A DNA stretch of 64,000 nucleotides, taken from NCBI GenBank assembly GCA_946965045.2, contig OX337232.1, positions 1,612,001-1,676,000 of the forward strand. Direction: 5' to 3'. Source of the DNA: Epithemia pelagica. Lineage: Eukaryota > Protista > Bacillariophyta. A program made the translations under genes and the position numbers. The notes under the pieces are model-generated. The model did not search any database, was not told the DNA's origin, and saw nothing but the letters and a program-made list of their open reading frames with translations. This document shows, in pieces, positions 10,008 through 35,739 of this stretch. Position 1 is the first letter of the stretch. Every line of letters starts with the position of its first letter.

Positions 10008-10105
10008 TTTGTCTGTTCGGGCACAGGCAGAGAGATGGAGGATGAGGGGACTGCCCACGATGTTCGACAGTAGCTACTTTCACTGCTCCTGGAGACTGAA
10101 CCACA

Positions 10106-15327: not shown

Positions 15328-16110
15328 TGTTAGAATTCTCACCGTCTATGGTGGTTAGATTCTACATCTCATCGATTCCCCATGTCACATAGCCTCGTGC
15401 TATCGCATCATGCCCTCTAGCTTCGAGCTATGTTTCCTAGCTTCGCGCTATATCAACCTATATTTCTTCGCAAATCATGAAAAGTGAGAATAGATTGACG
15501 AACTCACTCTCAAGACTAAACTGGGTCGTGCGGTATTACAACGGACATAAATTTGGCCGTTGCTCGGACATTATACTAACGCCCTAAGCGTACGCGCCCG
15601 AAATCATCGAGCGCGCCCAAGCGACATCCGAGCGCTATCGGCATCTATCCGATCCAACGGTCTAAGTATCCCAAGCACGACACACGATCACGCGAGACCA
15701 TATTTCCATTCCCACAATCTCCAAATTGTCAACAAGCTGCGCGCCATGAAAACAACTATGCCAACCCAAAGCAAGAGCTGTTGACCCTGTATATGTTATC
15801 CGCCCACATATACATGTCATATACATCACATGAATCAACTCCAACTATTCCAAACCTGTTGCCGCCAAGAACCTATGACACATGACCCTTGGCAGGACCG
15901 AACATTTCACGTAGACCTATCGTAGTAATCAACACACAATCTAACAATATCACCATTTATCACATCCTCTTTTGTGTCCCGACTATCCTTCTGATAGACT
16001 TCGACTTGCTTGCTTCTCTGACCCTGAGAAGCTTGTATCGGTTGGTGACCTACCTGATTGTCTGCTCTACCGAGCATCAATGTCCCTACGATTCAGAAAG
16101 AATTGTAACA
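15328..16110 (+). repeat. 5' LTR
   Basis: TGTTAGAATT...GAATTGTAACA, direct repeat of 22929-23711. Confidence 0.97.
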
Positions 16111-16124
16111 GATTAACAGTCTCA
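16111..16124 (+). promoter_or_regulatory. Putative primer-binding site complementary to the anticodon stem-loop of tRNA-Asn(GUU) (half-tRNA priming)
   Basis: GATTAACAGTCTCA directly after the LTR; reverse complement TGAGA-CTGTTAA-TC is a canonical anticodon arm. Confidence 0.65.
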
Positions 16125-16146
16125 AAGCTTATTTCCTTGTGGTTTC

Positions 16147-16926
16147 ATGGATACTAACGAGATTATCACTCCTGTACGACAGATCTATCGAGCCAACCTG
16201 CATCCCGGGCAGCCCGATACCCTGGTGCAGCAGGAACTGGTGCCGACGCCGAAGGCAGCCAACACATCGGTCAACATCTCCGTCGACAGTTCCAACAGCA
16301 ACCCATTCGAGACTCCAACCCAGCCTCACGCTCCAATCCCTGCGCCGTTGCTTCGGCCCCCGAGTCCGCCTCGTCGGCTCGTCCCTTCTCGATCCCGTCG
16401 TACCACCCGGTTGATTGCTGATCATATCAAGTACTTCCGCCAACCAACTTGTTCGACCTTCGATCCCGAGATCATCCGTGGGGAGACCCAGATCGAACGC
16501 CAGTTCCAATCGGTGACCCACATCGTCGACCAAGAAGACATTGACCGTCTGAACGACCAACTTCATCGTTCTCCGAGGCGTCGCCTCATCTTTGCCGCCC
16601 TCTCGGGCAACCCCATCCGTACTGTCCACCTTCGCTTCCTAACCTTCGAGCGCCCAACTGGATACTACAATACCATCCACGTCGTGAACGCGACGACTTG
16701 CCCTCTGCCTCCTAACGTTGTACGCCTAGATAACTACGTTGCCTACATCCACGAGGTCCATACCATCGAGGACCATCGTGCAACTATCTACCCTTTGCGT
16801 GCCGAGGTCGAGAACCACCTGGCTGAAGGTGATTCCCCTTCTTCTGTTGCATGTGCTGCCCCATCTGAGCCTGGAAGCGACTCTGATCATTCGGAAGAGG
16901 GTGAGGATTCGGAGACCGAAGCTTAA
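16147..16926 (+). CDS. Extra ORF (259 aa) of the copia element upstream of gag-pol; Pro/Arg-rich N-part, acidic tail
   Basis: ATG-initiated open frame between 5' LTR and gag-pol; no gag or pol motif recognised. Confidence 0.65.
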   Translation: MDTNEIITPVRQIYRANLHPGQPDTLVQQELVPTPKAANTSVNISVDSSNSNPFETPTQPHAPIPAPLLRPPSPPRRLVPSRSRRTTRLIADHIKYFRQPTCSTFDPEIIRGETQIERQFQSVTHIVDQEDIDRLNDQLHRSPRRRLIFAALSGNPIRTVHLRFLTFERPTGYYNTIHVVNATTCPLPPNVVRLDNYVAYIHEVHTIEDHRATIYPLRAEVENHLAEGDSPSSVACAAPSEPGSDSDHSEEGEDSETEA

Positions 16927-17246
16927 TTACTCATAGTTAACTCCCGTCCTCTCAAAACCTTTCCAAGACTTAAACTCAACGCACATCCGGGTACCCTTGG
17001 TCGCACAACACGCCACACATTCCCGTCAAATCGCGAAAATTCGGCGAAAATTTGTTGAAACTCGGCGAAAATTTGTCGAAATCAACGGAAATTTCCAGGA
17101 GTCGCACATCACAACACACATCCGGGTATCACATACGTGGTACATACGTGGCACACGTGGTACATCCGGGTTCACATCACATCACACATTAAATAAACCA
17201 CATCACACCGCACATTAAATAAACATCGAACCAACCAAATAACACC

Positions 17247-20200
17247 ATGGATCCTCAATCACCCAAGACACCTATGACTCCTAAGGGAGAAGATAACCAA
17301 GACAATGTCTCGGACACAGACCTATTCGACCACATCATATTTACTGTCTGCCAATTCTTCACCAAAGAAAGGGCCGACTACTTAATGAAGTGGATGAAAT
17401 ACCATGGTTTTGAGAACATTACCCATGTTATCTCGTATATGCAAACTAATACCGAGGAATCCATGAAGGAACTGACACAATACAAGGTCAACAAACAGAC
17501 ACATGATCTACAAGGCCCCACAAGACAGCAGATCAAGCTCTTGGCTTATTGGGCCACATACAAGACCAATGAAATTCAAGACGAGCTATCCAATAGCGAC
17601 TGGATGAACCTAACGAGGAAAGAGTTCAACACTTGGAGGATCAACACAGATTTCTCTAAGGGACCACCTAGTCAAGTCCCAGTCTCGCCAATGAAGTCAC
17701 CGTCATCTGTGAAATCTGTCAGCACAGTTACTGCCGCATCCCAATCTCAACAAGACCTTACAGCATTCAGAAAGGGAACTAAGCGCGACGCAACTGCATA
17801 CGAGGTATTCAAGGATGAACGATACTACGATTCATTCTGGCGTGTATTCAAGACTACAGCTAAGGCTCAAGGCCTATCCAACGTCCTGAATTTCAAATAC
17901 ACACCACCCCATGATGATGAGTATGCCGAAGAACTTTTTCAAGAGCAACAAGTATTTCTTTACTCCGTTCTTGTCCGTATCATTCAGACTGACCAAGGTC
18001 GAGCCTATGTACGTGAACATGAACATGATGAAGATGCGCGTGCCGTATTGCAGAAGTTACACTCTTTGCATACCGAATCCGACCTAGCAAAGCGAGAAGT
18101 CCTCCGCTTAACCAACTACATTTCCAATCTACGTCTTGACGACACATGGCGCGGAACAACACGTCAATTTCTTCTACACTTTCAAGAGCAGCTACGTTTG
18201 CTAGACAATTTAGTGACATTGTCTGATCGCATCCCTGATCATACCAGGATGACCTTCCTCATGCAAGCTGTAGAAAAGGTACCTGATCTCCGCCGAGTCA
18301 AGATCTTGGATAATGTGGTGAACACCAAATCCGGTGCAAAATCCCTTTGCTATCAATCATACTTCCGTCTCCTTCTAGACGCAGCTTATGACCATGATCA
18401 AGCAACCCAGTCATCTGTTCATAGTCGCCGTCGACATGTCAAACAACATGAATCACTATATGGCCAAGATACAGATGCTGACATAACCTCACAAGATGAT
18501 ATGGAGTATCATGTCCACAACACCAAAGCGACATCTGAATCTCCATCCTCTTCGTCCAAGGTTAGTCTACCGCGTGACCTATGGTTCAAACTTTCTGAAG
18601 AAGATCGCAAGTTGATCATTGAGTATAACAAGATGATTCAAGCACCTTCATCAACAACACCGAGGACAGTGCAAACACATGCCCTCGACATTGATCCGGA
18701 ACCTGATCCTGACCCCAACCAAGTTGCATCTGATGACGACTCACCTGGCGTAGTCCCTGAGCATTCAGATGATTCAGATCCGGTTACACAATTTATCAAC
18801 CAAGCCATGACGACTGATATCAATCACCCGGCAACTGACCTGACTAGTGTTCTTTCTAACGCCAAGTCCAAGACAAGCAAGAAGGTTACTTTCAAAGCCA
18901 ACATGCATAAACAAGCAGGACATGTCCCACGCTATCTGTTTTCCAGGAAATCTACTTTACCAGGGAATCAATTGATTGACCGTGGTGCTAATGGAGGACT
19001 TGCTGGTTCTGACATGCGCATCCTTTCTAAGACTGGCCGTCATATCACTATTGTGGGTATTGATAACCATGAACTTACTGGGCTCCCTGTCGTCACATGT
19101 GCCGCAAAGTTTGAGACCAATGATGGACCTATTGTCGGCATCTTCAATGAATATGCTTATTATGGGAAGGGCTTATCTATCCATGCTCCTGGTCAATTCG
19201 AGCATTTCGGACTTGCTGTTGATGAACGATCTGTTAAAGTTGATGGTAAACAACGCATCACTACACTTGATGGTCGTGCCATACCCCTTCACATCAAGGA
19301 TGGGTTAGCCTACATCCACTCCTTGGGTATCCCCAGCGACGATGACATGGATACCTTACCTCAGATCATCTTCACGTCACCCGACACATGGGATCCTGGT
19401 GTTCTGGACCATTCGTATTCTCCCACACCCTCTGACAATGATCCTGATTGGAAACACGTCAAGACTGATGGTAGTATGTCGAACCATCCATATGACAACT
19501 ATGGGGAGTACACTGATCGTGTTGTTTGTAACCTCAATCTCCTTTTGGATCTCCCATATGACCATGGACCTGACGACGCACCCTTCTTTTCTATCTATGC
19601 TGACGCAGAAGGTAATGATCCTACACTTCATGCCTCTGTCCACCGTCGTTACCAGGAAGCGTATGACTGGAAGAAGTTCCGTCCATTCTTTGGTTGGCAA
19701 TCTGAAGATGTTATTGCCGATACGTTCAAGCACACTACACGTAATGGTAGCATTCCTTTTGACCACGACACCCTCAAGAAACATTTCAAGGCTCGCAATC
19801 CGGTCCTTAATATACCTCGACGTCATGAACCCGTTGCTACTGACTCGGTTTTCTCCGACACCCCTGCTGTTGACCATGGCGGTAAAGTCGCACAAATCTT
19901 TGTTGGTCGAGATACTCTGGTTACTGATATCTATGGGATCAAGTCGACCAAACAGTTTGTCAATACTCTCCAGGATAACATCCGGTTTCGTGGTGCCATG
20001 GAGACCCTTATCAGTGATGGTGGTTCATCTCTCATCTCTCAAAAGGTCAAAGACATTCTTCGCACTTTGCTTATTGGGGAGTATCGATCTGAACCTTATC
20101 ATCAACACCAGAATAAGGCTGAAAACCGTTATCAGACCGTTAAACGTATGACCAACGCTCTCATGAATGCCACTGGTTGCCCTGCCAACACCTGGCTTCT

Positions 20201-22934
20201 TTGCCTTGAGTATGTCTGTGACTTATTGAACCATACGTCATCACCCACCCACTCCGGTCGCACTCCTCTTGAGGCTCTCTCCGGTCGCCCACCCGACATT
20301 ACTCATCTCTTGTTCTTTCCTTTCTGGGATGAGGTTTACTACCGTGTCGACCCCGCTGAACCCAATTCCGGTTCATATCCATCTTCTTCTGATGAGAAAC
20401 TTGGCCACTGGGTTGGTTTTGCTCACAACGTTGGTGATTCTTTTACTTGGAAAATTCTCACCCAGGATAACCAGATAATTTATCGTTCTGCCGTTCGCCG
20501 TGTTGAATCCACTACACCTAACCTACGTGTGGATCGACCTTCAGGGGAGGATTCGTCTGAGAAGGATGACAATGATAAGCAAGCTGACACTGTCTTCATT
20601 CGCAGTGATAGTGAAGATCCATCCAAACCAATGCCCACGATCGATTTTGACGACATGATAGGACGCACATTCCTATGCGACACAGAAGAAAATGGGGAGC
20701 GACACCGTGCACGTGTCATCAAACGAGTCATTGATCTTAATGAAGAAGCAACGAAACAGGAAGAACGTGTCAAGTACATTTACCGAAAGACAAATTCTGA
20801 TGTTGATGAGATGATATCCTATAATCAACTCATGGAGTATATCGAACGAGATAACCAAGCTCAAACCTCTGGAGATAATCTTTTCAGGTTCAGGGATGTC
20901 ATTGCCCATCAAGGCCCACTGAACACAACTGATCCAGATTACAAGGGGAGCAAATATAATTTGCTTGTTGATTGGGAAACTGGGGAGACTACCTATGAAC
21001 CTTTATCACTCATCGCCAATGATGATCCGATCACTGTAGCAATTTATGGAAAGAAACATGGTTTACTCAACGAACCTGGATGGAAGCATTTGAAACGTTA
21101 TGTCAAAACAAGCAAACGTCTCATTCGAGCAGCCAAACAGTCAAGGATTAAACAAGTTCACCATTCCGTCAAGTATAAGTTTGGATTTCAAGTACCACGC
21201 AATTATGAGGAAGCTGTTGCTCTTGATAAACAACATGGCAACACAAAGTGGCAGGATGCAACAGAATTAGAATTGTCACAGATCCAGTCCTACAAGACAT
21301 TCAAGGATTTTGGGAAAGCCATCTTCATTAAAGGGAAAGTATCCAATGCACCTGAAGGATATCATAAGATACGTGTGCATCTTGTCTTTGACGTAAAACA
21401 TGATGGACGACATAAAGCAAGACTTGTCGCAGATGGACATCTCACAAAAGAACCTGTTGAGACAATCTATTCAGGTGTTGTTTCCATTCGCAACCTCCGC
21501 ATTGCCTTATTCCTGGGTACTTTGAATGACTTGGAAATATGGGGAGCAGATATTGGAAATGCATATCTGGAAGCCTTGACAGGGGAGAAAATTTTCATTG
21601 TCGCAGGACCTGAATTCAAGGAATTAGAAGGTCACATCCTGATTATATACAAGGCACTTTATGGATTGAAGTCATCAGGCGCACGCTGGCATGATGTCTT
21701 ATTCGATGTTTTGACAGACATGGGATTTTCACCAAGCAAAGCAGATCCGGATATCTGGATGAGGAAAGCACCTGGAGAAGACTGTTACGAATACATTGCC
21801 GTATACGTTGATGACTTAGCCATTATTTCTACTGATCCTGGGAATATCTGCAAGATCCTGAAGGAGAAATACAACTTCAAACTCAAAGGAGATGGACCTA
21901 TTGATTTCCATTTGGGATGTTGTTACACCAAGGATTCTGATGGAACATTCGTAGCAGATCCAAGACGCTACATTGGTAAGATGATGGACACTTTCGAACG
22001 AATCTTCAAGGAGAAACCCAAGAAAGCCAAAACACCTCTTATTGGTGGAGACCATCCTGAATTGGATGATTCTGAGCTCCTTGATGAAGAAGGTACTAGC
22101 CATTTCCAAACTCTGATTGGACAACTCCAATGGGTGATCACTATTGGTCGTTTCGACGTCTTCACCGCTACAATGACGCTATCACGCTTTCGTGCTGCTC
22201 CGAGGAAAGGACATCTTGATAGAGCCAAGCGTATCTATGGATACCTTGCACATCTCCCAGAAGGCGCAATCAGATTTAGGATTGGAGAGCCTGATTATTC
22301 AAGTCTTCCTACCCAAGAATTTGATTGGACTCGCACTGTCTATTCGAATGCAAGTGAACGTATTCCTGAAGACTGCCCAACACCTCTTGGCCGCTATGTT
22401 ACCACAACTCATTATGTTGATGCCAATCTCATGCATGACATAGTCACTGGTAAATCCGTCACTGCTGTTCTACATTTGTTGAACGGAACACCTATTGACT
22501 GGTACAGCAAGAGACAGAGCACGGTGGAAACTGCTACCTATGGATCCGAGTTTGTGGCTGCAAGGACAGCAATAGATCAGATTACAGAATTACGACATTC
22601 TCTCCGCTACCTTGGAGTACCTATCCGAGAGCGAAGTTACTTGTACGGAGATAACAGATCTGTTGTGCTCAATGCAACCGTTCCTCACTCCATACTATCC
22701 AAGAGACACCATCTTCTGTCATACCACCGAGTTCGTGAAGCCATCGCAGCAAAGTATGTTGCATTCTACTGGAAAGATGGAAAGACCAACCCTGCCGATA
22801 TCCTTCGCAAACATTGGGATTTCGTATCTATTTGGCCCATGCTCAAGCCATTGTTGTTTTGGAAAGGGGAAGTTCAAGATCTCAACAAATCCAATGATGA
22901 CAAGGCTGAAACGACGAGTTGTGGGGAGTGTTAG
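17247..22934 (+). CDS. Copia gag-pol polyprotein (1895 aa)
   Basis: Protease LIDRGANGG; integrase VATDSVF / ISDGG / HQNKAENRY; RT KARLVADG, LYGLKSSG, YVDDL; RNase H YVDANL, YGDNRSV. Confidence 0.97.
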   Translation: MDPQSPKTPMTPKGEDNQDNVSDTDLFDHIIFTVCQFFTKERADYLMKWMKYHGFENITHVISYMQTNTEESMKELTQYKVNKQTHDLQGPTRQQIKLLAYWATYKTNEIQDELSNSDWMNLTRKEFNTWRINTDFSKGPPSQVPVSPMKSPSSVKSVSTVTAASQSQQDLTAFRKGTKRDATAYEVFKDERYYDSFWRVFKTTAKAQGLSNVLNFKYTPPHDDEYAEELFQEQQVFLYSVLVRIIQTDQGRAYVREHEHDEDARAVLQKLHSLHTESDLAKREVLRLTNYISNLRLDDTWRGTTRQFLLHFQEQLRLLDNLVTLSDRIPDHTRMTFLMQAVEKVPDLRRVKILDNVVNTKSGAKSLCYQSYFRLLLDAAYDHDQATQSSVHSRRRHVKQHESLYGQDTDADITSQDDMEYHVHNTKATSESPSSSSKVSLPRDLWFKLSEEDRKLIIEYNKMIQAPSSTTPRTVQTHALDIDPEPDPDPNQVASDDDSPGVVPEHSDDSDPVTQFINQAMTTDINHPATDLTSVLSNAKSKTSKKVTFKANMHKQAGHVPRYLFSRKSTLPGNQLIDRGANGGLAGSDMRILSKTGRHITIVGIDNHELTGLPVVTCAAKFETNDGPIVGIFNEYAYYGKGLSIHAPGQFEHFGLAVDERSVKVDGKQRITTLDGRAIPLHIKDGLAYIHSLGIPSDDDMDTLPQIIFTSPDTWDPGVLDHSYSPTPSDNDPDWKHVKTDGSMSNHPYDNYGEYTDRVVCNLNLLLDLPYDHGPDDAPFFSIYADAEGNDPTLHASVHRRYQEAYDWKKFRPFFGWQSEDVIADTFKHTTRNGSIPFDHDTLKKHFKARNPVLNIPRRHEPVATDSVFSDTPAVDHGGKVAQIFVGRDTLVTDIYGIKSTKQFVNTLQDNIRFRGAMETLISDGGSSLISQKVKDILRTLLIGEYRSEPYHQHQNKAENRYQTVKRMTNALMNATGCPANTWLLCLEYVCDLLNHTSSPTHSGRTPLEALSGRPPDITHLLFFPFWDEVYYRVDPAEPNSGSYPSSSDEKLGHWVGFAHNVGDSFTWKILTQDNQIIYRSAVRRVESTTPNLRVDRPSGEDSSEKDDNDKQADTVFIRSDSEDPSKPMPTIDFDDMIGRTFLCDTEENGERHRARVIKRVIDLNEEATKQEERVKYIYRKTNSDVDEMISYNQLMEYIERDNQAQTSGDNLFRFRDVIAHQGPLNTTDPDYKGSKYNLLVDWETGETTYEPLSLIANDDPITVAIYGKKHGLLNEPGWKHLKRYVKTSKRLIRAAKQSRIKQVHHSVKYKFGFQVPRNYEEAVALDKQHGNTKWQDATELELSQIQSYKTFKDFGKAIFIKGKVSNAPEGYHKIRVHLVFDVKHDGRHKARLVADGHLTKEPVETIYSGVVSIRNLRIALFLGTLNDLEIWGADIGNAYLEALTGEKIFIVAGPEFKELEGHILIIYKALYGLKSSGARWHDVLFDVLTDMGFSPSKADPDIWMRKAPGEDCYEYIAVYVDDLAIISTDPGNICKILKEKYNFKLKGDGPIDFHLGCCYTKDSDGTFVADPRRYIGKMMDTFERIFKEKPKKAKTPLIGGDHPELDDSELLDEEGTSHFQTLIGQLQWVITIGRFDVFTATMTLSRFRAAPRKGHLDRAKRIYGYLAHLPEGAIRFRIGEPDYSSLPTQEFDWTRTVYSNASERIPEDCPTPLGRYVTTTHYVDANLMHDIVTGKSVTAVLHLLNGTPIDWYSKRQSTVETATYGSEFVAARTAIDQITELRHSLRYLGVPIRERSYLYGDNRSVVLNATVPHSILSKRHHLLSYHRVREAIAAKYVAFYWKDGKTNPADILRKHWDFVSIWPMLKPLLFWKGEVQDLNKSNDDKAETTSCGEC
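22921..22928 (+). promoter_or_regulatory. Polypurine tract
   Basis: GTGGGGAG immediately 5' of the 3' LTR. Confidence 0.7.
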
Positions 22935-23711
22935 AATTCTCACCGTCTATGGTGGTTAGATTCTACATCTCATCGATTCCCCATGTCACATAGCCTCGTG
23001 CTATCGCATCATGCCCTCTAGCTTCGAGCTATGTTTCCTAGCTTCGCGCTATATCGACCTATATTTCTTCGCAAATCATGAAAAGTGAGAATAGATTGAC
23101 GAACTCACTCTCAAGACTAAACTGGGTCGTGCGGTATTACAACGGACATAAATTTGGCCGTTGCTCGGACATTATACTAACGCCCTAAGCGTACGCGCCC
23201 GAAATCATCGAGCGCGCCCAAGCGACATCCGAGCGCTATCGGCATCTATCCGATCCAACGGTCTAAGTATCCCAAGCACGACACACGATCACGCGAGACC
23301 ATATTTCCATTCCCACAATCTCCAAATTGTCAACAAGCTGCGCGCCATGAAAACAACTATGCCAACCCAAAGCAAGAGCTGTTGACCCTGTATATGTTAT
23401 CCGCCCACATATACATGTCATATACATCACATGAATCAACTCCAACTATTCCAAACCTGTTGCCGCCAAGAACCTATGACACATGACCCTTGGCAGGACC
23501 GAACATTTCACGTAGACCTATCGTAGTAATCAACACACAATCTAACAATATCACCATTTATCACATCCTCTTTTGTGTCCCGACTATCCTTCTGATAGAC
23601 TTCGACTTGCTTGCTTCTCTGACCCTGAGAAGCTTGTATCGGTTGGTGACCTACCTGATTGTCTGCTCTACCGAGCATCAATGTCCCTACGATTCAGAAA
23701 GAATTGTAACA
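22929..23711 (+). repeat. 3' LTR
   Basis: Direct repeat of 15328-16110. Confidence 0.97.
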
Positions 23712-24460
23712 AGGGGCCATGGTTGTCAAGCTCGATTTCTCGTCGTGCCACGCACCACAAGGTTTTTGAACCAAAAGACGACGCAACGCTGCTCGTTCAA
23801 AATGAGCTCTCGGCTCGTCGTACTTCATGGCCATTTAGTGTAGACACTAAAGTAGCTTACCGAAGTCTCAGATCTGGCGTAGGGGTCATGGTGGTCGAGC
23901 GCGATGCGATCGTTGTTGAACAATTTCTCGTCGTGGCACAGACCACATGAGATTTCGACCAAAAGACGACGCAACGCGGCTTGCTCAATATGAGCTCTCG
24001 GCTCATCCTACTTAGTGGACACTTGGTTAGCTCCTACAGTAGCTTACCGAAGTCTCAGATCTGGTGTAGGGGTCATGGTGGTCGAGCGCAATGCGATCGT
24101 TGTTGGACAATTTCCCATCGTGGCATAGACCACATGAGATTTTGACCAAAAGACGACGCAACGCGGCTCGTTCAATATAAGCTCTCTGCACGTCCTACCC
24201 AATGGACACTTAGTTTAGCTCCTACAGTAGCTTACCGAAGTTTTAGATCTGGCGTAGGTGCCATGGTTGTCGAGCGCGATGCGATCGTCGATGGGCAACT
24301 TCTCGTCGTGGCACAGACCACATGAGATTTTGACCAAACGACGACGCAACGCAGCTCATTCAATATATGCTCTCTGCACGTCCTACCCAATGGACACTTA
24401 GTTTAGCTCCTACAGTAGCTTACCCAAGCTTTAGATCTGGCGTAGGTGCCATGGTTGTTG
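23712..24460 (+). repeat. Continuation of the left-arm array: about four diverged type-C units (~187-188 bp), absent from the right arm
   Basis: AGTAGCTTAC recurs at 23851, 24038, 24226, 24414; shares CAGATC[CT]GG[CT]GTAGG-CCATGG and TCGTCGTG[GC]CAC with type-B units. Confidence 0.85.
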
Positions 24461-24553
24461 AGATTGAATCGATCTTAAAGCAGAAACGTTTTTAACTAAT
24501 GAAGCAAGTGTCTTGCCTTGTTTCTAACGTCAGCACTATATGTAGTTACTCAA

Positions 24554-25345
24554 CTATTCATCTTCAGAACTATCGCACAGGTCAACGAAGAACATAATCT
24601 TGGGCTTCTTGCGCTTGTGATGAGTCGGTGCCTTTTCCTTCGTGGTGGCTCGGTGTGGGATCGGCACAAACAAAGAAGAGGCACGACTGTAGCGAGGTTT
24701 CGGATCGACCTTGGTGATGGCACAGGGAGGATCTTGTTGGCGGCAGCGTTTGGTCACGAATGGTTGAAACGGACTCGTCGCATCGTTGTGATGCAATTCG
24801 TCGTGTGGCTTGGGGGAGGCCGCAATCAAGTGACGATGCGGTGCGGCAGGAGCTGGATCTTGGTGGGCTTCTTCTTCTTCTTCTTCTTCTTCTTCTTCTT
24901 CTTCTTCTTCTTCTTCTTCTTCTTCTTCTTCTTCTTCTTCTTCTTCTTCTTCTTCTTCTTCTTCTTCTTCTTCTTCTTCTTGTTCTTCTTGTTCTTCTTC
25001 TTCATAATCTTCTTCATAATCATCATCATCATCTTCTTCTTCTTCTTCTTCTTCATAATCATCATCTTCATCTTCTTCTTCTGCTTGGGCTTGTCGTTGT
25101 TCGTTGTGGTTGCTCCGCATGGCGTCCATTTCCAACAAGACTCGTCCTACGAGTTCGGCAATGATGGCCGCATCAGACGGCGATGGCGACGACATGCTTT
25201 TACTGCAAGTGATGGCAGGACTGAGGACCGACGAATCGAATCCCGCCCCGTACCAGTCAATGAAAGTGTTTGGAGGGAGAAGATCTTTTGTTTTGTGGCT
25301 GCTTGTTCGGAATTTTGTGGGAAGGCGATGCCACCAAGTAACCAA
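24554..25345 (-). CDS. Poly-Glu acidic cargo protein, basic C-terminal patch
   Basis: Open frame through a (GAA)n tract; ends HHKRKKPKIMFFVDLCDSSEDE; start codon uncertain. Confidence 0.55.
   Translation of the reverse strand: MVTWWHRLPTKFRTSSHKTKDLLPPNTFIDWYGAGFDSSVLSPAITCSKSMSSPSPSDAAIIAELVGRVLLEMDAMRSNHNEQRQAQAEEEDEDDDYEEEEEEEDDDDDYEEDYEEEEQEEQEEEEEEEEEEEEEEEEEEEEEEEEEEEEEEEEEEEEEAHQDPAPAAPHRHLIAASPKPHDELHHNDATSPFQPFVTKRCRQQDPPCAITKVDPKPRYSRASSLFVPIPHRATTKEKAPTHHKRKKPKIMFFVDLCDSSEDE
24868..25081. repeat. (CTT)n microsatellite, ~38 perfect units plus a degenerate extension
   Basis: Directly visible. Confidence 0.95.
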
Positions 25346-25700
25346 TGACTCCCAAGCGTCAACTCTTCAAACACTATTCTATATAGATCAATAGTGTATA
25401 ATTCACTCCTTCTCTCCATAAATTTTCGAGCGCTAGTGCTTACTTGAGGGCGTCGTATCTTTCGGTCGCTCATCAGCATGATAGCCAGGCATAGCATGGG
25501 TAGTCGGAGGAGAGTTGGAGGGAATATGTCACACGTTCCCCAAATTTCCCCCAATCCACAGATGAATTTTATTGCAAGTCAACTGATCGAGATCGCAGAC
25601 ACAAGTGACGAGAGACGAGAGAGACAAGAAACCATGTCCGAGAGCTCATTCAACACAACAATGAACTAAAGTATTACATGCAGCTATAAACTAATAAGTC

Positions 25701-26936
25701 TCAATTGTTCAAATCGAGTCCACCGAGCACTTTCGTTGGTGAGGAGTGAGGGATGTTGTGACCGTGCTTGTAGAATTTTGCGAGACGATCATTCATCTTA
25801 TATTCGGTCGGTAATTCATAGTTGTTTCTGGGTGGGTATGTATGGACAGTCTCATCGCGTCCTTGGTACACGTAGAAATGGGCACGTGGATCACCTTGGG
25901 TACCATTCACGAAGCCTCCAGCGTGAACGGTATCGCCTCGCATAAGCAGCATCGTTCCATAAAGGATCTCAACCACCTCACCCAGCTGATGGAGTTTGGC
26001 AGTGTGGTTGTTACGATGCTGCCATATTTCCACGGCCATGCCGGCTTCCGTCAGGGGCATGAAGACAACAAACGGGACACGTTCTTTGAACGGTGCCTTT
26101 TTCTTTCCCACTCCCCGAGTTGTCACTCCTTTCGATCTCGGGCTCTCACCGGGCAAAAGGTCATACGAACTCGGCGTGACAACTTCCCACATGAAGTCCA
26201 GGTGCGGCTCTTGGACTTTTGGCTCTTCGGTCTTGATATAGGACAGGTGAATCTGGATTCCGTCCGCAAACGAGACGTCTGCTGCGTAGCCCATCTCCAC
26301 AAGGGCTTGAGCGAGAACTGTCTTGAACTTCGTCGTCATTGCAGCTAGCTCGTCCTTAGAGTAGGCGCTAAAGTCATGGCTCATCACAAAAGCTTCATTT
26401 TCCTGCATGCGCATTTGAATTTGCTTCGAGAAGTTTTGAACCCCTCGCATCCTCTTCGTGATCTTGTCCTTTCCGTGCCTGTCCGTTCCGAGACACCACG
26501 GTAGACGCAACATATCAAGCAGCTCCTTCGCAACCACCACAAAACGTCCTCGGTGGTCACCCTTGAGATCGACCAACAAATGGGCATGCTTCCGGTGCAG
26601 TTCCTTCACTTGCTGCTCTGTAGTCGCTTGTTTGACGACGGAATCTTCAATGCGCTCGAGTGACGGAGCTGCCGATCCTCCCGGACTGGAGAGATGATGG
26701 AGTACCGGGTGATGGGAAGGATGAATGGGCTGTGGTGGTACCTGCCCATATTCTCCATAAGGTGGCTGCCCGTAGGCCGGCGAGTAATGAGGCTGACTTT
26801 GCCCTGGGAAGTGCACCGACGCAAATGCGGACTGCTGATAGTGGGGAGGAGATTGGTACAGAGGAGGTTGGCGTGGAGGATGATAGTACGGTGGAGGCTG
26901 CTGTGGATGTTGGTACGGAGGAGATTGGCCGTAGGT
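25701..26936 (-). CDS. 2OG-Fe(II) dioxygenase-like (double-stranded beta-helix) frame with Pro/Gln/Tyr-rich leader; in frame with the upstream SET ORF across one TAA
   Basis: QEPHLDF (HxD), FVVFMPLT strand, LLMRGDTVHAGG (distal His), GDPRAHFY (2OG-binding Arg); frame is open from 26936, just after the stop. Confidence 0.75.
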   Translation of the reverse strand, partial: TYGQSPPYQHPQQPPPYYHPPRQPPLYQSPPHYQQSAFASVHFPGQSQPHYSPAYGQPPYGEYGQVPPQPIHPSHHPVLHHLSSPGGSAAPSLERIEDSVVKQATTEQQVKELHRKHAHLLVDLKGDHRGRFVVVAKELLDMLRLPWCLGTDRHGKDKITKRMRGVQNFSKQIQMRMQENEAFVMSHDFSAYSKDELAAMTTKFKTVLAQALVEMGYAADVSFADGIQIHLSYIKTEEPKVQEPHLDFMWEVVTPSSYDLLPGESPRSKGVTTRGVGKKKAPFKERVPFVVFMPLTEAGMAVEIWQHRNNHTAKLHQLGEVVEILYGTMLLMRGDTVHAGGFVNGTQGDPRAHFYVYQGRDETVHTYPPRNNYELPTEYKMNDRLAKFYKHGHNIPHSSPTKVLGGLDLNN

Positions 26937-28235
26937 TTAATGGTCGTGAGCAGGGACAAGACCACGGGCTGGAGGAGGGGAACCAAGAGGAACAGGGGCA
27001 GTCGCAGTGGCAGCAATGGCAGGAGTAGTGACCTGAGGAATCGGAAAAACAACAGGAGCATCATCCACCGGACCATGTTCAGAGAGCTGCACTGGAGAAT
27101 CCGCCTCACCAGAACAACGTGTATTTGGCTTCTTCTTGTTCTTCTTCTTTCCGGGCAAATCTTCGCTCTCTTCCCCACCAGTGGATCTACCACGCTTCTT
27201 TCCTGCGCCCTCGCAAGGGATGTAGGATGAAGCTTGCATTGCATTCTCCTGGGTGATGTTGTAGAACAAGAAACACTCTTTGCCCTCGTCGATGTCCCTG
27301 ATTGCGCGGACGAGAAGATTTTTTTCTACTTTAATGTTGTACATTTCATCTGCTTCGTTGGGGACTTCACCCTTGTCGTAGAGGTCGTAGTAGGGATCGT
27401 TGCTCAGGTGGAATCCCATGAAAAAATAGTTCTTGTTGTCAGGTTGAACGGTGCGTGGTTCATCGTCGGCTCCAAATTGAAGCGAGTACTCGCTCCGCGG
27501 GACAAGTTTTGTTGTTACATCCTGTCCTGCATAGACACCTATCACCTCTCCTTCTTTGTATTCCTGCGCTGCAAAAATACCAAATCCACCGTCTTTTCCG
27601 TCTTTGACTTTGACCTTCGACTTCTTCACAACAAAGAGAGGTGTTTTTCCCAGCATAATGTTGAACTCCGGGTCATGGTCGAGCGTGAAACTGACATTCG
27701 GGAAAACGTTCATTTTTTTCCCTCGGTGTTGCTTCAACGGAATCCCAATTCCCACAGATCTCGATGCATTTGTTCCGAGTTCGACACCGTACTCATCGAC
27801 CTCCTTCTTGATACCTGTCCCTGATTTCCGAATGGGAGCAGCTTTCACCAAAAATGTTACGCTAATCTTCTGCGAGACGAACTCTCCGTATGCGTTGAGA
27901 AGCACATCACTTTCGTGGATTGTAGAGGCCAGATGTGTGAGACCTTGGATGAAAGTGGTACGCGGATCTCGCGTAGAGCTCTTAATGCGCTTCACTGCTG
28001 CGACGGCGGTCCTGTAGGCCTCTTTACGTCGGGCAACGAGGCGCTGACTCACCGCCCGGTGCGTGACGCTGTAGGCTTTGTCACTATCATCCTTCAGATT
28101 GCCTCGACGACTCTCCGCAATCCTATTTTCGGTCACCATAGCAAGATCTGCGTCCGAAAGAAACCGATGATGACCCGCTGTTGGTGTCGCTTCCTTCGTT
28201 GTTGTCATCTCCTCTTCGGGCGCTTCGTCTGCTGT

Positions 28236-28316
<81 letters not shown>

Positions 28317-28382
28317 TGGCGGTGCGGCTGCCTGTGAGACAGTGTCTACAGCATCCAAAAGAGTATCAAACCTCTTTGGCAT
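26937..28382 (-). CDS. SET-domain lysine methyltransferase-like protein (transposon cargo, SET-2) with Ala/Thr triplet tract near the N-terminus
   Basis: GGFGIFAAQEYKEGEVIGVYAG, FMGFHLSNDPYY, YNIKV, AIRDIDEGKECFLFY; same subfamily blocks as SET-1. Confidence 0.85.
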
Positions 28383-28780
28383 CGTTTATCGTTTTATTCT
28401 CGTGTTCAACAAAAGGTTTCCTTCGTCGGTCGAACACTTGAAACGCGACAAAACACCACGATCCACAGTTGACTTGAACTAAAATTGAGTAACGCTTTTG
28501 AGAATCCAAACTTACTTATGCCCTGTGCGCATGGCAAAGCCACATTTTTGGTGCGTTGACTGCTGCGACTGCATTAGGCACATTTTTCGGTATGTTGACT
28601 GATGCGACTGCGTCACAAACTGAGAGGTTTTCCCTCCAACATCGATCCACAGTTCATTCAACAACCACGTTTCCAAATCGGAAATTTGCTTTCGACCCAC
28701 GATGGAAATTGTCTTCCTTTACCTTTTACATTGCTCAGAATAAAGACGCGAGACAAAGCGGTAGAGAAAGATAATCAAAG

Positions 28781-29375
28781 ATGCCCACGACGCAGAAGGC
28801 GAAAGATCAGAAAGCACCTTTAGGAGTTGGAACGAAATGCTACATACGACAAGGAGACAGGGCATGTATTATTATTGAGGCCCTTGATTTGCAAAAGTGG
28901 CGTGTTGCTGTAGTAGACAGGCAAGGCAATCCTACTGACCAGATAGAAGAAGCCACGTCCAAGAGACTACGGAAAATAAAGAAAGATGAGCGCTTTCCTG
29001 GGGAACCCGTACCGGACCCAGATGAAACAGCCGTAAGCACAACCGCAACCGAGACCGTGGCCGTAACCGCAACCGCAACCGTAACCGCAGCCGCAGCCGC
29101 AACAACGACCACAACCACAACCACAACCGCAGCCGCAGCCGCAACCGAGACCGCAACCGCAGCCGCAGCCGCAGCCGCAGCCGCAGCCGCAACAACAACC
29201 ACAACCACAACCGCAGCCGCAGCCGCAGCCGCAACCGAGACCGCAACTTCAACCGCAGCCGCAACAACAACAACAACAACAACAACCACAACCGCAACTG
29301 CAGCTGCAACCGAGACCGTGGCCGCAACTGCAACGGAGACCGTGGCCGTAACCGCAACCGCAACCGAGGCCGCGG

Positions 29376-29433
<58 letters not shown>

Positions 29434-32283
29434 AACAACGACAACGACAACGACAGGAGCTGAGCCACCCGTCACGGAAGCGAGTACAATTCACCCACCG
29501 ATTTTGACAGATGTGGACCAAGACAAAGACGATCCGAACATCATAGCGCAAGCTGCGGAAGCGGAGAATGTAGACCACGGGCCCCCAACCAATGAAGGCA
29601 ATGCAAATGATGAAGAGGAAGGTGGTGCTGCTGTTATTGCCGAGGCAGCGGCCGCTGCCGCCGCCGATGAGGATGACTCGTCGGTTGCAGCAGCGGATAA
29701 TGAAGCCGCTGAAGATCCAACGGAGCTTGATGCAGATCTTGAGAATGAGGGGGCTGAGCAAGCCAATGCAATGGCTCTCGGGGCCCTTGTTGAACAAGAC
29801 GACGACATTCACCGTCAGAGATTTGCGGCCTATAGGGCTCGAAAACAGCATCTCATTACGTCCAACTGGAAAGTGACCATGAAACCTCCAAAGAAGAAAG
29901 GGATTGAGGTCGGGGATAGAGTTTCCGAGAGGGGTGCGAATCCTCGATACGGGATAGTCATCAGCAGAAGAAAGGATCCAAATGCTACTCAAGGAAACCT
30001 GTGGACGGTGCATTTTGATGGAGATGAGGAAGCGACCATAGATATCAAGCATACCCAACTCCGAAAGCCCGACGACAACCGAACTTTCGTATGGAAGATT
30101 GTACGGGATTCGTCTCCCGATGAGTCAGTCACCGAATACCAAGAGGCTGTTGGAATTGTAGGCTTCGACTTTTTGGGGAAAATGGCTCCGTACGAAATTA
30201 GCGCAGATAATATTGAGTACAAGTACCCCTTTCTTGACTTGTTGATTCATTTCTGGCCTGGTAAGTCAGCACTCTTTTTCTTGAATGCTCTTTAGTCCAT
30301 GTCTCATTTTTCTATCGATTTGTTCATCCATTACAGGAAATTGGCGTGATCAGCTAAAAAACCTTAATTTATTCTTAGAGCGAACAAACCCTTCTCGCCA
30401 TAAAAAGAAGAAGATTCGACCCGTGACAGAGAAAGAATGGTGGGTTGTATGGGGAGTGATCCTCTCTGCCAATCCCCTCAAAAAGGGAGGAAAGGCTCTT
30501 TTCCAGAAGCCTGAACAACGACGGCTGTCGTCCACAGTGAATCTCGGTACAAAAGGCGAAAACTTTATTGCTGAGAGTCGGTTCATGGATATCAAAGAGC
30601 ATCTCAGGCATGCCTTTGCGGGACGGGACTCCACTGACCCCTGGAATGAAATCCGTCCATTGATTGACGGCTTTAATCAGAATCGCCGAGGCGTAGTCGC
30701 AGCATCCGCGACACAAGTGCTTGATGAATGCATGAGTGCATTTCAACCACGGACAACCAAGTCATCATTGTTGCCACATCTGTCTTACGTGGCACGGAAG
30801 CCCAAACCTCTTGGAACTGAATTCAAGGTGAGTAAATGGAGAAGAGGATATTTCCAGAAGCTTTGTTACTCACTGTGTGATATTCCCTTGACAGGTGACT
30901 GCAGACACTGCGACTGGGTGTCTGACCTTTCTTGAAATCCAAGAAGGCAGACTCCCAATGCGTGCGAAGAAGTATGTTGATGGTTTGGGAGTAACTGGAG
31001 CGACAACTCTGCGACTGATTGAGAGCTCGCAATACTCAGGGCAGCAATTAAATGGTCGCTATGAATCCCAACTCGATTCCAAGCGATGCCTCTATATCGG
31101 AGACTCTTGGTTTGGAAGTGTCAAGATGGCCGAGAACCTCAAGTGTACGTGGCACGAGCAGAGGGAGGACGACGATGATGATGGTCTCGTGTATTACGTG
31201 GATAAGGAGAAAGGGGTCAACCCAGACGCCCACGAAGTGATTGGTGCCGTCAAGACCGCCCACTCTTGGTTCCCCAAGGACGAACTTGAGAAGGAGATGA
31301 AGGACTTCCCATCCGGCGCCTATCTCGTCATGGAGTGCACGGCACCTGAGACGGGAGTAAAGCTTGTTGGAATCGGATACAAGTACAACTCACGGAAGGT
31401 CCTCCTCTTTGTTATGACTAAAAATGCGGGGAAAACGATCCCGGGATCTCCGTACATTGCTCGATTTACCGATGAGTTCGGCAATGTCAAAAGCCGGAGA
31501 GTCGAACGGCCTGACTGTATTTCCCAGTACTTCAAGTGTGCGAATAAAATTGACCGTCACAATCATCTGCGTCAGGGCATCCTCCGTCTCGAGCAGTACT
31601 GGAGAACAGTTGATCCATGGTTTCGCATTGCGACAACGGTGTTCGGAATGACAGTGTCTGATTGTTACCTTGGCATGCGTTTTCATCTGCAAGCGGAACC
31701 ATTCTCGAGCTTTACGATCGAAGACTTCGCGGATATGCTCGCAAACGACCTTTTGAGAAACAACTTTTCCGATGATCGCAGCAATCGAAAGGCGGGCATG
31801 TTACCAAACATCCCAGTGACACGTCGTCCGCCGCTTTCGGTACACACTGTTGGGCCCTCAGCTTCTGTGCCATCGAGCGTGCACAATGTGGGGGGGAATG
31901 CATCTCCTAACTCCATGGTGTCTGATCTGACCAATGATTCACTGGTTTGTCATGAGGTTGTGGAACAGGCAGAAAAGTCTTTATCTGACCAGCGGCCCGT
32001 GAAGCGCAAATGTGTTATTTGTAAAAATGACACGAGATCAATGTGCGGGCATCCAACATGCTGCAATATGATCAAGATGTTTTGTGGGGAAGCCAAAGTT
32101 GGAGTTCCTTTGTGTAAGCCCTCCATGGGTATTCGTCGCGGGGAAGTGCGGACTTGCCTTGAAGAGCACATGTGCCGTGTTATTGCGGCAAGCCAAAAGG
32201 AAAACCACAACTCATTTGTCCCGAACATGAGAACCGGGTCGACTCTACATTGTTTCATGTCTTTGCATATTAATAAATTATGA
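28781..32283 (+). CDS. piggyBac-like (PGBD) DDD transposase, join(28781-30260,30337-30827,30895-32283), ~1119 aa, with two Tudor/SH3-barrel-like N-terminal modules and a Cys-rich C-terminus
   Basis: VLDECMSAF...RKPKPLGTEFK, YIGDSWFGSV, NKIDRHNHLRQ; C-terminal CxxC...CxxxxC...LC...CxxxH; GTAAGT..ACAG and GTGAGT..GACAG introns keep the frame. Confidence 0.88.
29037..29456. repeat. Compound triplet/hexamer microsatellite encoding a Thr/Ala linker in the transposase
   Basis: (GCAGCC)n, (ACAACC)n and (ACAACG)n runs, all in frame. Confidence 0.9.
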
Positions 32284-32345
32284 TTAGGAGCTTAGTAACA
32301 TCGAAATCTTAGTACTCAAGTGTAATATGCTATGGGATCCTACGA

Positions 32346-32882
32346 CTAATAGGTTCGAACGCTCTCCTGATGGGGCCACGTCTCTGTCGCTTTATCAAAA
32401 AGTGACATGAACGTAGCCATCCCAACAACACTCATCGGCACAGTAATGACCATGGGCCCCATGGCCATCTTGGTATCCAAAGAATGAGCCGTTTCAATCG
32501 TGAGCTCTCCTTTGACAAGGGAACCGCTCTTGGAACGGAACTTCTTGGAGCGTATTTTCTTGTAGATCGATCCGACTGGGATGACGACATCAGGCATCGA
32601 ATCATCCATCTTCTCCCGACCAAATGCGCTAATTGATAGCATCCCACCGTTGCTCCCGTACTTGGAACGCTGTAAAAGAACGACGCCTCGATCCACCACA
32701 AGCGTCCCCTTTCCACCTTTCCCATCACGAGCGACGTCTTGGACGTACACATTCACGCCCGCTTCGCCATAGATCGTTGCTCGGCTACCATGGAGCTGAA
32801 TCTCGCTCCCGTCATCTTGCATCACGTTGAACCCATTTGCAAGGAGAAGTCTATTGCGCGATTTGTGCTCGTATTCCGACAT
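32346..32882 (-). CDS. Uncharacterised cargo protein 'X2' (178 aa), homolog of 3613-4122
   Basis: VNVYVQD...VVDRGVVLLQR, IPVGSIYK, DTKMAMGPMVITVPMS align to X1. Confidence 0.75.
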   Translation of the reverse strand: MSEYEHKSRNRLLLANGFNVMQDDGSEIQLHGSRATIYGEAGVNVYVQDVARDGKGGKGTLVVDRGVVLLQRSKYGSNGGMLSISAFGREKMDDSMPDVVIPVGSIYKKIRSKKFRSKSGSLVKGELTIETAHSLDTKMAMGPMVITVPMSVVGMATFMSLFDKATETWPHQESVRTY

Positions 32883-33371
32883 CGTCCTTCGTCCATCGTA
32901 AATGTAGAAAATATGAAGGGTGAGACGCGATGAGTCGCACAGTGCAAAACAAGTTTGAGATAGGCACTTACCTCTTTTCCTACTCCTTATTGGATTGTCA
33001 AATGAAAAGTCTTTAGTTAGAGGAGCTTGCCACTCAGATGGCCGATCAATTCTCTCCTCTCTGCACGAAAGGACGAACACGTCCGTGGTATCCAGTCGGC
33101 ATGCATAAAAATGCAGTTGTGGTTTGGGGGAAACGGTGGGGACTTTCTACAATTGCCACTCGGGATTAATTAAAACAACGTGACGATATGCTTAAGAAAA
33201 GTTCCATCCGTTGAAGCGCGTGCCCTCCACAATTTACAGCGCGACAAGATTTTTATGTGAGACGACTGGTCGATCATCAATCAAATAACAAGAGCAACCT
33301 TCCCATAAAGGCATAAAGGACAGCAAGGAAAAGAAAACAGACGACAAAAGCAAGGACAAAGAAAGAAAGAC

Positions 33372-33884
33372 ATGTCGCTCTACATCGACAAGCGCCGTGT
33401 TAGTGCGAGGCTCCAAGGCCGTACGACCAAAAGTGTTGTCACAACTGGTGCATCCAAACCCACTATGCGCCCAACCCAAAAAGGTGCCCACAAGAACAAC
33501 AAGAACAACAACAACGACGACAATGCGAAAGCCGTAGATACGGAGAAGAAGAAGGAGATCTTGCTCGGGTGTGATGCAATTGGTGTGGAAATGAGTCGAT
33601 CATCAATCCTCAAGATGAGAGACGATTTCCTGGAACATGGATCGAACGGAGGGAGCAACACTCCAGTGCGCCATTCCAAGATCAAGTTTGCTGATGAGAT
33701 CAGCCCCATCCCTGAAGACAATCAGAAGCCTTCGTCCCGTTTATCCACCCTAAGCACCGCCTCCATACGTAGCCTCAAGAGTGCATCTTCCGGTGGAACT
33801 GCTGTAGACAGCGATCTTTCGTTCGACTTTGCCGAGACTCAACAAGATAACGGTGACTTCCTCTTCAAAACCTATGGAAAATAA
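33372..33884 (+). CDS. Uncharacterised low-complexity cargo ORF 'Y2' (170 aa), divergent from X2
   Basis: ATG-initiated; basic N-terminus, Ser-rich/acidic C-terminus; head-to-head with X2 as Y1 is with X1. Confidence 0.5.
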   Translation: MSLYIDKRRVSARLQGRTTKSVVTTGASKPTMRPTQKGAHKNNKNNNNDDNAKAVDTEKKKEILLGCDAIGVEMSRSSILKMRDDFLEHGSNGGSNTPVRHSKIKFADEISPIPEDNQKPSSRLSTLSTASIRSLKSASSGGTAVDSDLSFDFAETQQDNGDFLFKTYGK

Positions 33885-33963
33885 ATGATAGTTAAGCCTG
33901 TCAAGTATAGCAATGACGATAAATATGGAAACATAAGCTTTAGAGTTGGATCATAGCGCGGCT

Positions 33964-35714
33964 TCGTCCATTGGTCCAAAATCCTTGTGCTCCGTGGCAC
34001 GACGAATGATTGTCCATGGATGATCGCCTCGATCATGAGGACCATGGCCCCTAAGCCGGATCTGAGACTTGTGTAACCTAACTTAGTCTCTATAGTAACG
34101 GGCAAAAAAGTAGGACGTCCAGAGGGACCATTGTCGAATATTGGCATGGCATCGTCCATTGGTCCAAAATCCTTGTGCTCGGTGGCACGACGAATGATTG
34201 TCCATGGATGATTGCCTCGATCATGAGGACCATGGCCCCTACGCCGGATCTGAGACTTGTATGACCTAACTTAGTCTCTATAGTAACGGGCAAAAAGTAG
34301 GACGTCCGGAGGGACCATTGTCGAATGTTGGCATGGCATCGTCCATTGGTCCAAAATCCTTGTGCTTGGTGGCACAACGAATGATTGTCCATGGATGATC
34401 GCCTCGATCATGGGGACCATGGCCCCTACGCCGGATCTGAGACTTGTATAACCTAACTTAGTCTCTATAGTAACGGGCAAAAAAGTAGGACGTCTGGAGC
34501 GGCCATATCCATGGAGCCGGGTCTCGTCATCCTTTGGTCGAAAACTCGTGTTGTGTGTGATGCGTCGATAAGAAGCGTCCATCGATGGATGGCCTTTTCT
34601 CAATGGCCATATCACCGATGATCGATCTGATACCTCAGATCGCTAAAGTAGAGCCGAACATAAAAGCCTACTAAGTAGGACGTCTGGAGCGGCCATATCC
34701 ATGGAGCCGGGTCTCGTCATCCTTTGGTCGAAAGCTCCTGTTGTGTGTGATGCGTCGAAAAGAAGCGTCCATCGATGGATGGCTTTTTCTCAATGGCCAT
34801 ATCACCGATGATTGATCTGATACCTCAGATCGCTAAAGTAGAGCCTAACATAAAAGACTACCAAGTAGGACGTCTGGAGCGGCCATATCCATGGAGCCGG
34901 GTCTCGTCATCCTTTGGTCGAAAGCTCCTGTTGTGTGTGATGCGTCGAAAAGAAGCGTCCATCGATGGATGGCCTTTTCTCAATGGCCATATCACCGATG
35001 ATTGATCTGATACCTCAGATTGCTAAAGTAGAGCCTAACATAAAAGACTACTAAGTAGGACGTCTGGAGCGGCCATATCCATGGAGCCGGGTCTCGTCAT
35101 CCTTTGGTCGAAAACTCGTGTTCTGTGTGATGCGTCGAAAAGAAGCGTCCATTGATGGATGGCCTTTTCTCAATGGCCATATCACCGATGATCGATCTGA
35201 TACCTCAGATCGCTAAAGTAGAGCCTAACATAAAGGACTACTAAGTAGGACGTCTGGAGCGGCCGTATTCATGGAGCTGACTTCGACGAATGAGTAGGCT
35301 AATCTCATGTGGTCCGTGCCACGTCGAAAAATCGACGCAATGGTGTGGAAGCTCGTTTGCATCCTATGCTTGGGGATAGCCTATATGGGTCAATACTGTT
35401 CTCATTTACACTAAGGTCGATAACTTATTTTAATTTCATGGCAATTGGTCAAGTATTGGTGGAGAAATTGCATGGTGAATGTACCGGCCAACGGGCAATC
35501 TAGCGGCCAAATCGCAAAAAAAATGACCCTACAATGATGAGAGAGAACTCGATGACGATGGCAGATATGGAAAAAGTGCCCGGTGGGGACCTAAAGTATT
35601 GTATGAAGATGATTTCTATCATCCCATTTCTATGGAGGTGTATATTGAGCTAGTAATCGTTAAAGACCACCATGGTCATTTGGCCGCTAAAATGCAGGGT
35701 CTGGCCGTATCACC
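33964..35714 (-). repeat. Right inverted arm: type-B units, four 190-bp type-A units, unique terminus
   Basis: Reverse complement of the left arm; AGTAGGACGTCTGGAGCGG recurs with a 190-bp period from ~34485 to ~35245. Confidence 0.9.
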
Positions 35715-35739
35715 CGTGAAGGCACTAGTGCGGCGCCGC

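Follow-up and report, generated by a model that had tools for sequence, protein, structure and literature searches.

The 64,000-nt stretch of Epithemia pelagica contig OX337232.1 (assembly GCA_946965045.2, positions 1,612,001 to 1,676,000, forward strand), hereafter the window, was analysed around one minus-strand reading frame, 25701-28382, in which a SET domain and an Fe(II)/2-oxoglutarate (2OG) oxygenase are separated by a single TAA codon. On the best explanation, this region is a cargo gene with a single exon, carried by a piggyBac-like transposon, that became a pseudogene when a C-to-T substitution at 26939 changed a CAA codon to TAA (probability about 0.85). The intact gene would encode a protein of ~893 aa, made up of a helical region with a divergent SET domain, a disordered linker and the Fe(II)/2OG oxygenase, while from the window copy only a SET-only product of 481 aa could be made.

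Reading frame and position of the stop codon

Retranslation of 25701-28382 (-) gave one frame of 894 codons whose lone internal stop is codon 482 (TAA, 26939-26937), in agreement with a sequence-only reading of the same DNA that preceded this analysis. The frame was divided into the following parts, all on the minus strand.

25701..28382, the fusion frame as a whole, 894 codons with one break; terminal stop at 25701-25703
26940..28382, N-terminal 481 codons (Ala/Thr-rich start, conserved helical region from the HHRFLSD motif, SET domain, start of the linker); matched by Pfam SET and aligned with the SET open reading frames (ORFs) of loci L001, L002, L004 and L006
27258..27587, SET domain core, residues 266-375, with motifs GFG, FHLSNDP and FLFYN; from Pfam SET and alignments
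26661..27257, low-complexity linker of ~200 codons, Pro-, Gln-, Tyr- and His-rich, including the basic patches KKRGR and KKKNKKK; holds the stop; one-frame equivalents in L004, P0078, P0154 and P0175
26937..26939, TAA nonsense codon; CAA in the sister copy of runs X1-X3
25704..26660, Fe(II)/2OG-oxygenase domain of 319 aa with a double-stranded beta-helix (DSBH); from an AlphaFold model, fold matches and invariant residues in a 30-sequence alignment
26202-26204 (His), 26196-26198 (Asp), 25923-25925 (His) and 25884-25886 (Arg), iron and 2OG residues; from the 30-sequence alignment

Past the TAA the first in-frame ATG is 142 codons downstream, at 26513, within the conserved C-terminal domain; the sequence-only reading had likewise seen no ATG until well inside the downstream ORF. 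Since no in-frame ATG is offered until inside this domain, the part that follows the stop cannot be a separate gene of the ordinary kind. Long trinucleotide runs were found towards both ends of the fusion gene: a GCA/ACA run (28232-28316) encodes the Ala/Thr-rich start of the SET protein, and a GAA/TTC-type run on the other flank (24805-25132) gives poly-Glu or poly-Lys ORFs.

Relatives carrying SET and oxygenase in a single gene

Four relatives, all in one ENA assembly, were found when proteins were searched with the C-terminal piece, and their loci were retrieved. A region-limited search with the ORF of L004 found P0154, a protein of 967 aa with both halves, 43% identical to the SET piece of the window (359 aa) and 43% identical to its oxygenase piece (311 aa). 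P0154 is encoded by one unbroken ORF without an intron (L007, 8001-10904), and nine or more proteins of 948-970 aa, from different contigs, fall in its 90% cluster.

The remaining loci are broken in various ways. At L001, the SET ORF is followed by one TGA (context GGT TGA TCC) and then by the oxygenase ORF in the same frame. Two members of the L001-product cluster, P0175 (921 aa, an uninterrupted SET-linker-oxygenase protein) and P0173, have Arg at the position of this TGA, so that it is a copy-specific nonsense change, consistent with CGA to TGA. At L004, a 698-aa ORF runs from its start codon through the SET domain and linker into the first residues of the oxygenase domain, where a frameshift follows. 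P0078 (L006) reads from the end of the SET domain through the linker to the oxygenase domain in one reading and contains an internal deletion, and L002 carries several frameshifts within the repetitive linker. A conserved recoding site, suggested by the presence of the window TAA and the L001 TGA in the two linkers, was considered and rejected: the stops are at different positions, and the sister copies read Gln and Arg there.

Selection on the two halves was estimated by the method of Nei and Gojobori as the ratio of non-synonymous to synonymous substitution rates (Ka/Ks). Between the window and L001 (~55% amino acid identity), Ka/Ks was 0.29 for the N-terminal region with the SET domain and 0.30 for the oxygenase domain, with synonymous divergence (dS) of ~1.0-1.2, which is near saturation; pairs including visibly decayed copies gave 0.4-0.7. 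A ratio of about 0.3 in both domains implies that purifying selection kept both halves while the element lineages diverged.

The uninterrupted ORFs of the relatives, together with the sense codons in sister copies, identify the fusion as a real single-exon gene, and the breaks as ordinary lesions of individual copies. The proposal made from the sequence alone, that the SET domain and the oxygenase are halves of one gene, is thus borne out by single ORFs of 921 and 967 aa.

The sister copy and the nature of the stop

A close sister copy of the gene was found in three public runs of one organism (X1, X2 and X3), which consist of assembled, DNA-like contigs, with a longest record of 0.5 Mb. They came from a search open to runs of every type, which gave no RNA run. 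The runs hold ~70% of the sampled 31-mers of the window, as expected at ~1% divergence, and the copy is 99% identical. Comparison of the runs with the window covers 25350-28225, and the first 52 codons of the sister copy lie outside it. X1 and X2 each contain one 2388-nt contig over 25868-28225, with 23 and 25 substitutions, respectively, and zero gaps relative to the window.

At place 26939 the window has A, and G is found at all depth in X1, X2 and X3, so that on the coding strand the TAA of the window stands against a CAA (Gln) of the sister copy. With all listed differences applied, the sister frame has no internal stop and no insertion or deletion over 25651-28225. The search for a sense codon at the stop in other copies, proposed with the sequence-only reading, therefore gave CAA. 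That reading had offered three accounts of the TAA (an intron, a nonsense change and a base error); the CAA of the sister copy and the intact 921- and 967-aa relatives favour the second, by which the stop would be an ordinary nonsense change specific to the window copy.

Of the 14 transitions that separate the two copies at 25748-28033, eight have CpG in the sister copy against TpG or CpA in the window, with none in the reverse direction; this one-way bias fits decay of the window copy through deamination of methylated CpG, the methylation itself being presumed. The stop-making change is a C-to-T transition outside CpG.

Several points weigh against this account. The differences between the window and the sister copy comprise 17 non-synonymous and six synonymous changes, a roughly neutral proportion, so that the sister copy may itself be drifting. 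The window's own version is in none of the runs (word share ~0.7), and because X1-X3 represent another version, a base error in the window assembly keeps some probability, which is weighed below. Lastly, structure prediction for the SET half from six sequences was too poor for use in a fold search (predicted local distance difference test, pLDDT, 47).

Other explanations of the interrupted frame

An error of base calling or assembly would make the true genome CAA and the gene an intact one of 893 codons. The G at 26939 in all three runs holding the region, and the lack of the exact window version in any run, are what this explanation would predict; however, these contigs show 23 further differences from the window, all of them substitutions and with a bias from CpG to TpG, and therefore represent another copy or strain, silent on errors in the window. 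The window copy also shows other signs of decay, namely a nested Copia element and the loss of 12 nt at the left tip of its transposon, and an error at this one codon is regarded as very improbable. Bypass of the stop in the window copy, either by splicing of an in-phase intron or by readthrough of the TAA to give the full fusion, is held to be very improbable. The GT at 27032 and the AG at 26901 proposed as intron borders are indeed present, 132 nt apart and in phase 0, and the transposase gene of the same element lies in three ORF pieces both in the window and at L001, so that introns probably occur in the genes of this element. Nevertheless, the donor (GTCACT) is weak, and an exhaustive count gave 104 frame-preserving GT..AG pairs of 40-400 nt spanning the stop, among which this candidate is not special. 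Intact relatives have continuous single ORFs that code through the linker, and exactly where the window has its stop a sense codon stands in the sister copy. No joint across the region was seen in the X1-X3 contigs, although these behave like DNA and thus carry no information on splicing.

The 132-nt intron (27032-26901) was accordingly rejected as uninformative: as one of 104 equivalent pairs it is a candidate without statistical weight, no better than chance, and in the intact relatives the linker is read as coding sequence throughout. A cryptic fusion by way of an in-phase intron, put forward from the sequence alone, is unsupported and unneeded given its rival pairs and the intronless single-ORF relatives. 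It is scarcely credible, finally, that the frame is shared by chance between two separate genes, one for the SET domain and its neighbour for the oxygenase. Gene callers do split the two at several loci, yet the stop is followed by 142 codons without ATG, single ORFs of 921-970 aa occur in many copies, L004 and P0078 code through the linker without interruption, and the splits at L001, L002 and L004 are copy-specific nonsense or frameshift lesions. The preferred explanation is still a fusion gene inactivated in the window copy by CAA to TAA.

The oxygenase half

At E<=1, Pfam gave no family for the 411-aa piece downstream of the stop and no oxygenase model for 20 family members; the sole Pfam match among these 20 was a Med26/TFIIS N-terminal domain preceding the oxygenase in P0018, a host-type protein, which is a weak hint of a nuclear setting. 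Across 1.84 billion representatives, a full HMMER scan matched 179 proteins at E<=1e-3, 56 of which also passed E<=1e-10. Residues were numbered along the domain encoded by 25704-26660 (-). In the 30-sequence alignment, Q150, H153, D155, D243, H246, A247, G248 and H261 are invariant, and R259, 13 residues past the distal His H246, is conserved in at least 90% of the 30 homologues. From its position, R259 presumably binds the C5 carboxylate of 2OG.

The AlphaFold model of the domain, made from the same alignment, had a pLDDT of 86 and a predicted template modelling score of 0.86. Foldseek searches of the PDB with this model gave matches of probability 1.00, E ~1e-6 and template modelling (TM) scores of 0.35-0.45, among them FtmOx1, TraH, SnoN, AsqJ, OkaE, KanJ, WelO5 and a bacterial prolyl 4-hydroxylase (P4H). 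VIA-align on the Foldseek matches gave Z up to 12.0, with values of 11-12 for AsqJ, OkaE, FtmOx1, KanJ and P4H at 10-16% identity. A wide VIA search, made independently of Foldseek, gave the following Z values.

AsqJ 11.8; Vaccinia C16 N-domain 11.3; KanJ 11.2
P4H 11.0; PHD2 10.6; OGFOD1 10.3
ALKBH1 (OsALKBH1) 10.1; AlkB 9.4; FTO 9.1

The gradient is shallow, with AlkB-type enzymes (9.4-10.1) just below the PhyH-like enzymes and P4H (11-12). JmjC chains are missing from the 50 listed matches of both VIA searches and of Foldseek, and Pfam gave no JmjC match; TET/JBP chains were likewise absent from the 50 matches listed of either VIA search. The best AlphaFold-DB clusters bear the automatic name 'Fe2OG dioxygenase domain-containing protein', and several structural neighbours of the oxygenase in that database are named C2H2-type domain-containing proteins. 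Structural matches in reviewed UniProt entries are fungal natural-product dioxygenases, a profile search of PDB sequences reached FtmOx1 alone (E 0.0075), and a language-model feature search led to 2OG and PhyH-like clusters.

The DSBH fold of the model and the invariant HxD...H triad together show that the C-terminal half is truly an Fe(II)/2OG oxygenase, one whose iron triad is intact and for which catalysis is predicted. The label of 2OG-Fe(II) dioxygenase given from the sequence alone is in this way upheld by the model, the fold searches and the triad, even though Pfam has no match. The family is undescribed, is without a curated model and lies at much the same distance from PhyH-like, prolyl-hydroxylase and AlkB-like enzymes.

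The further suggestion that the domain is an eraser, that is, a demethylase, is not supported: natural-product, PhyH-like and prolyl hydroxylases (Z 11-12) are the closest, AlkB-like enzymes (Z 9-10) are only a little lower, and neither JmjC nor TET/JBP is among the 50 matches listed. Judged by the refuting condition given with the sequence-only reading, a DSBH that groups with metabolic hydroxylases unrelated to chromatin, these matches weaken the idea of a chromatin eraser without settling it.

The SET half

The 481-codon piece matched Pfam SET (PF00856) with E 1.2e-5 and 26.1 bits, above the curated cut-off of 22.4, as did its L004 homologue with 27.9 bits, so that the SET domain named in the sequence-only reading stands. 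A profile of six family members reached the SET domain of EZH2 among PDB sequences (4e-5) and, more weakly, PR/SET domains; the single sequence gave a weak alignment to the SET domain of MLL1. Of the catalytic and AdoMet motifs looked for (GxG, NH(S/C)xxPN and the Tyr of ELxF/YDY), the weak alignments show a conserved GFG, an FHLSNDP with its His at the expected place of NHSCxPN, and an FLFYN with a Tyr. A Cys-rich post-SET region was not found in the SET half. By these matches the N-terminal half is a divergent SET domain of lysine methyltransferase type, with predicted activity.

The carrier transposon and its relatives

The fusion gene lies in a DNA transposon, the features of which are given below.

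13681..35724, no strand, piggyBac-like DNA transposon of ~22 kb carrying the fusion gene; from inverted repeats, flanks and transposase
~13684-15327 and 34048-35724, no strand, terminal inverted repeats of 187-190-nt subrepeats, 95-100% complementary; from repeat comparison
35725-35728, no strand, CTAG flank at the right end of the element; from the sequence
28781..32283, plus strand, transposase gene in three ORF pieces (28781-30295, 30285-30935, 30895-32283); Pfam DDE_Tnp_1_7 5e-8
15324..23224, plus strand, nested Copia-type long terminal repeat (LTR) retrotransposon; LTR pair 99%, RVT_2 and rve matches, absent from L005

The transposase gene is divergent from the fusion gene and 400 bp away from it. 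At L001, an unrelated locus, a 12-kb element has the same layout and long inverted repeats of subrepeats, and its transposase (5029-7740, minus strand) consists of the same three ORF pieces, 46-74% identical to those of the window. Conservation of the three pieces at this divergence suggests two conserved introns rather than damage by frameshifts. Across the elements of the window, L005 and L001, the inverted repeats measure 1.6-2 kb, consist of 187-193-nt tandem subrepeats and have tips of the form 5'-TGCC...GGCA-3'. They are flanked by CTAG at the right end in the window and at both ends of L005 (2871-2874 and 15675-15678), and by CTAT at both ends of L001 (~751-754 and 12902-12905). A TTAA target-site duplication was not found at the flanks in the window, L005 or L001; by the CTAG and CTAT flanks the duplication is 4 bp long without being TTAA, and this length fits piggyBac. 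The inverted repeats at 97% complementarity, the 4-bp flanks, the DDE_Tnp_1_7 transposase and the same architecture at L001 confirm the earlier suggestion that the gene is transposon-encoded.

L005 is the orthologous locus in the ENA assembly, with the same abhydrolase, RRM and VASt neighbours and 98.3-98.8% identity. It is without the nested Copia element (15324-23224) and without a 7-kb element present in the window at 3404-10399, an absence by which both insertions are judged recent and polymorphic. A 1.7-kb deletion in L005, corresponding to window 25543-27261, removes the end of the SET domain, the linker and the oxygenase. In the window, 12 nt including the terminal TGCC are missing from the left tip (13676-13690), which is intact in L005 (15660-15690), and the window element has probably lost the ability to be excised. 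As the element is common to the window and L005 and is damaged differently in each, it represents an insertion of sufficient age to be common to two genomes, and it has decayed independently in both.

In L002, L004 and L007, an ORF of ~1000-1100 aa, sharing 37% identity with window 6858-10058, lies upstream of the fusion gene. The fusion gene thus rides in two transposon types, which are unrelated.

The 7-kb element of the window was observed to have a transposase-like ORF of 1066 aa; in L004 and L007, the full SET-oxygenase fusion comes after relatives of this ORF. In the window the same element carries a SET-only ORF of 408 aa (5425-6648, minus strand) with an acidic tail and no oxygenase, matched by Pfam SET at 1.6e-5 and 33% identical to the focal SET core. 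The right end of the piggyBac-like element is directly adjoined, at 35729-36400, by the terminus of a second, related element (direct repeat D13, 79%; inverted pair I17), which suggests tandem or nested insertion at the same CTAG.

Comparison with known systems

SETMAR, a primate fusion of a SET domain with a mariner transposase, likewise links SET physically to transposon biology; it is a host gene that captured a transposase, whereas the SET-oxygenase described here is cargo, a gene of its own in elements that are or recently were active. The oxygenase half resembles AsqJ, OkaE, FtmOx1, KanJ and the prolyl 4-hydroxylases in its DSBH core, the HxD...H triad and the Arg after the distal His, but differs from PhyH-like and natural-product oxygenases in its low identity (10-16%) and TM scores (0.35-0.45), and in AlkB-type enzymes scoring nearly as high.

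SET and TET/JBP genes are known as separate cargo of transposons (PMC12730594). HarbingerS and MuDR transposons of Phytophthora carry SET cargo genes (Kojima and Jurka 2014, cited in PMC12730594) and, as far as they are described there, are similarly cut-and-paste transposons of stramenopiles with a SET-type methyltransferase gene beside the transposase. Going by the same descriptions, the present case is set apart by its piggyBac-like and giant-transposase carriers and by fusion of the SET domain to an oxygenase. Fungal DNA transposons carry TET/JBP dioxygenase genes (PMC12730594), which are also transposon-borne Fe(II)/2OG dioxygenases proposed to act on epigenetic marks. The window oxygenase, in contrast, has no Pfam match, has no TET/JBP chain among its 50 listed matches and belongs to a family of its own (the 179 representatives at E<=1e-3). 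Full-text literature searches found no description of a SET-oxygenase fusion in one polypeptide in a transposon. VANC of VANDAL elements is a transposon-encoded factor thought to counter host epigenetic silencing (PMC10398659); it is a DNA-binding protein, has no similarity to the SET-oxygenase, and serves as an analogy solely for the anti-silencing role that the latter might have.

Possible function and significance

The intact protein may be a nuclear enzyme in which the SET domain would methylate its substrate and the oxygenase would separately oxidise or hydroxylate chromatin, chromatin-bound proteins or nucleic acid. Such activity could benefit the element, for example by countering silencing. 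A stronger proposal is that the intact fusion is a two-headed chromatin enzyme, which would deposit methyl-lysine, remove or oxidise another mark on histone, DNA or a silencing protein, and so help the element to evade or redirect host silencing. This is considered unlikely, and its 'writer plus eraser' form is a hypothesis that the predicted fold does not favour. If the proposal were true, the fusion would be a novel type of anti-silencing weapon, with an oxygenase from a new family that is neither JmjC nor TET, and the window copy would be its dead relic.

For the locus itself, what the window contributes is a dated, decaying gene copy and not an intact one, in an element that, like its neighbours, is polymorphic between close relatives. 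On the favoured account, this copy shows cleanly that C-to-T nonsense lesions, rather than recoding signals, are what the in-frame stops represent. Under purifying selection and present in two unrelated transposon types of diatom-like genomes, the fusion would be a natural candidate for a counter-silencing enzyme.

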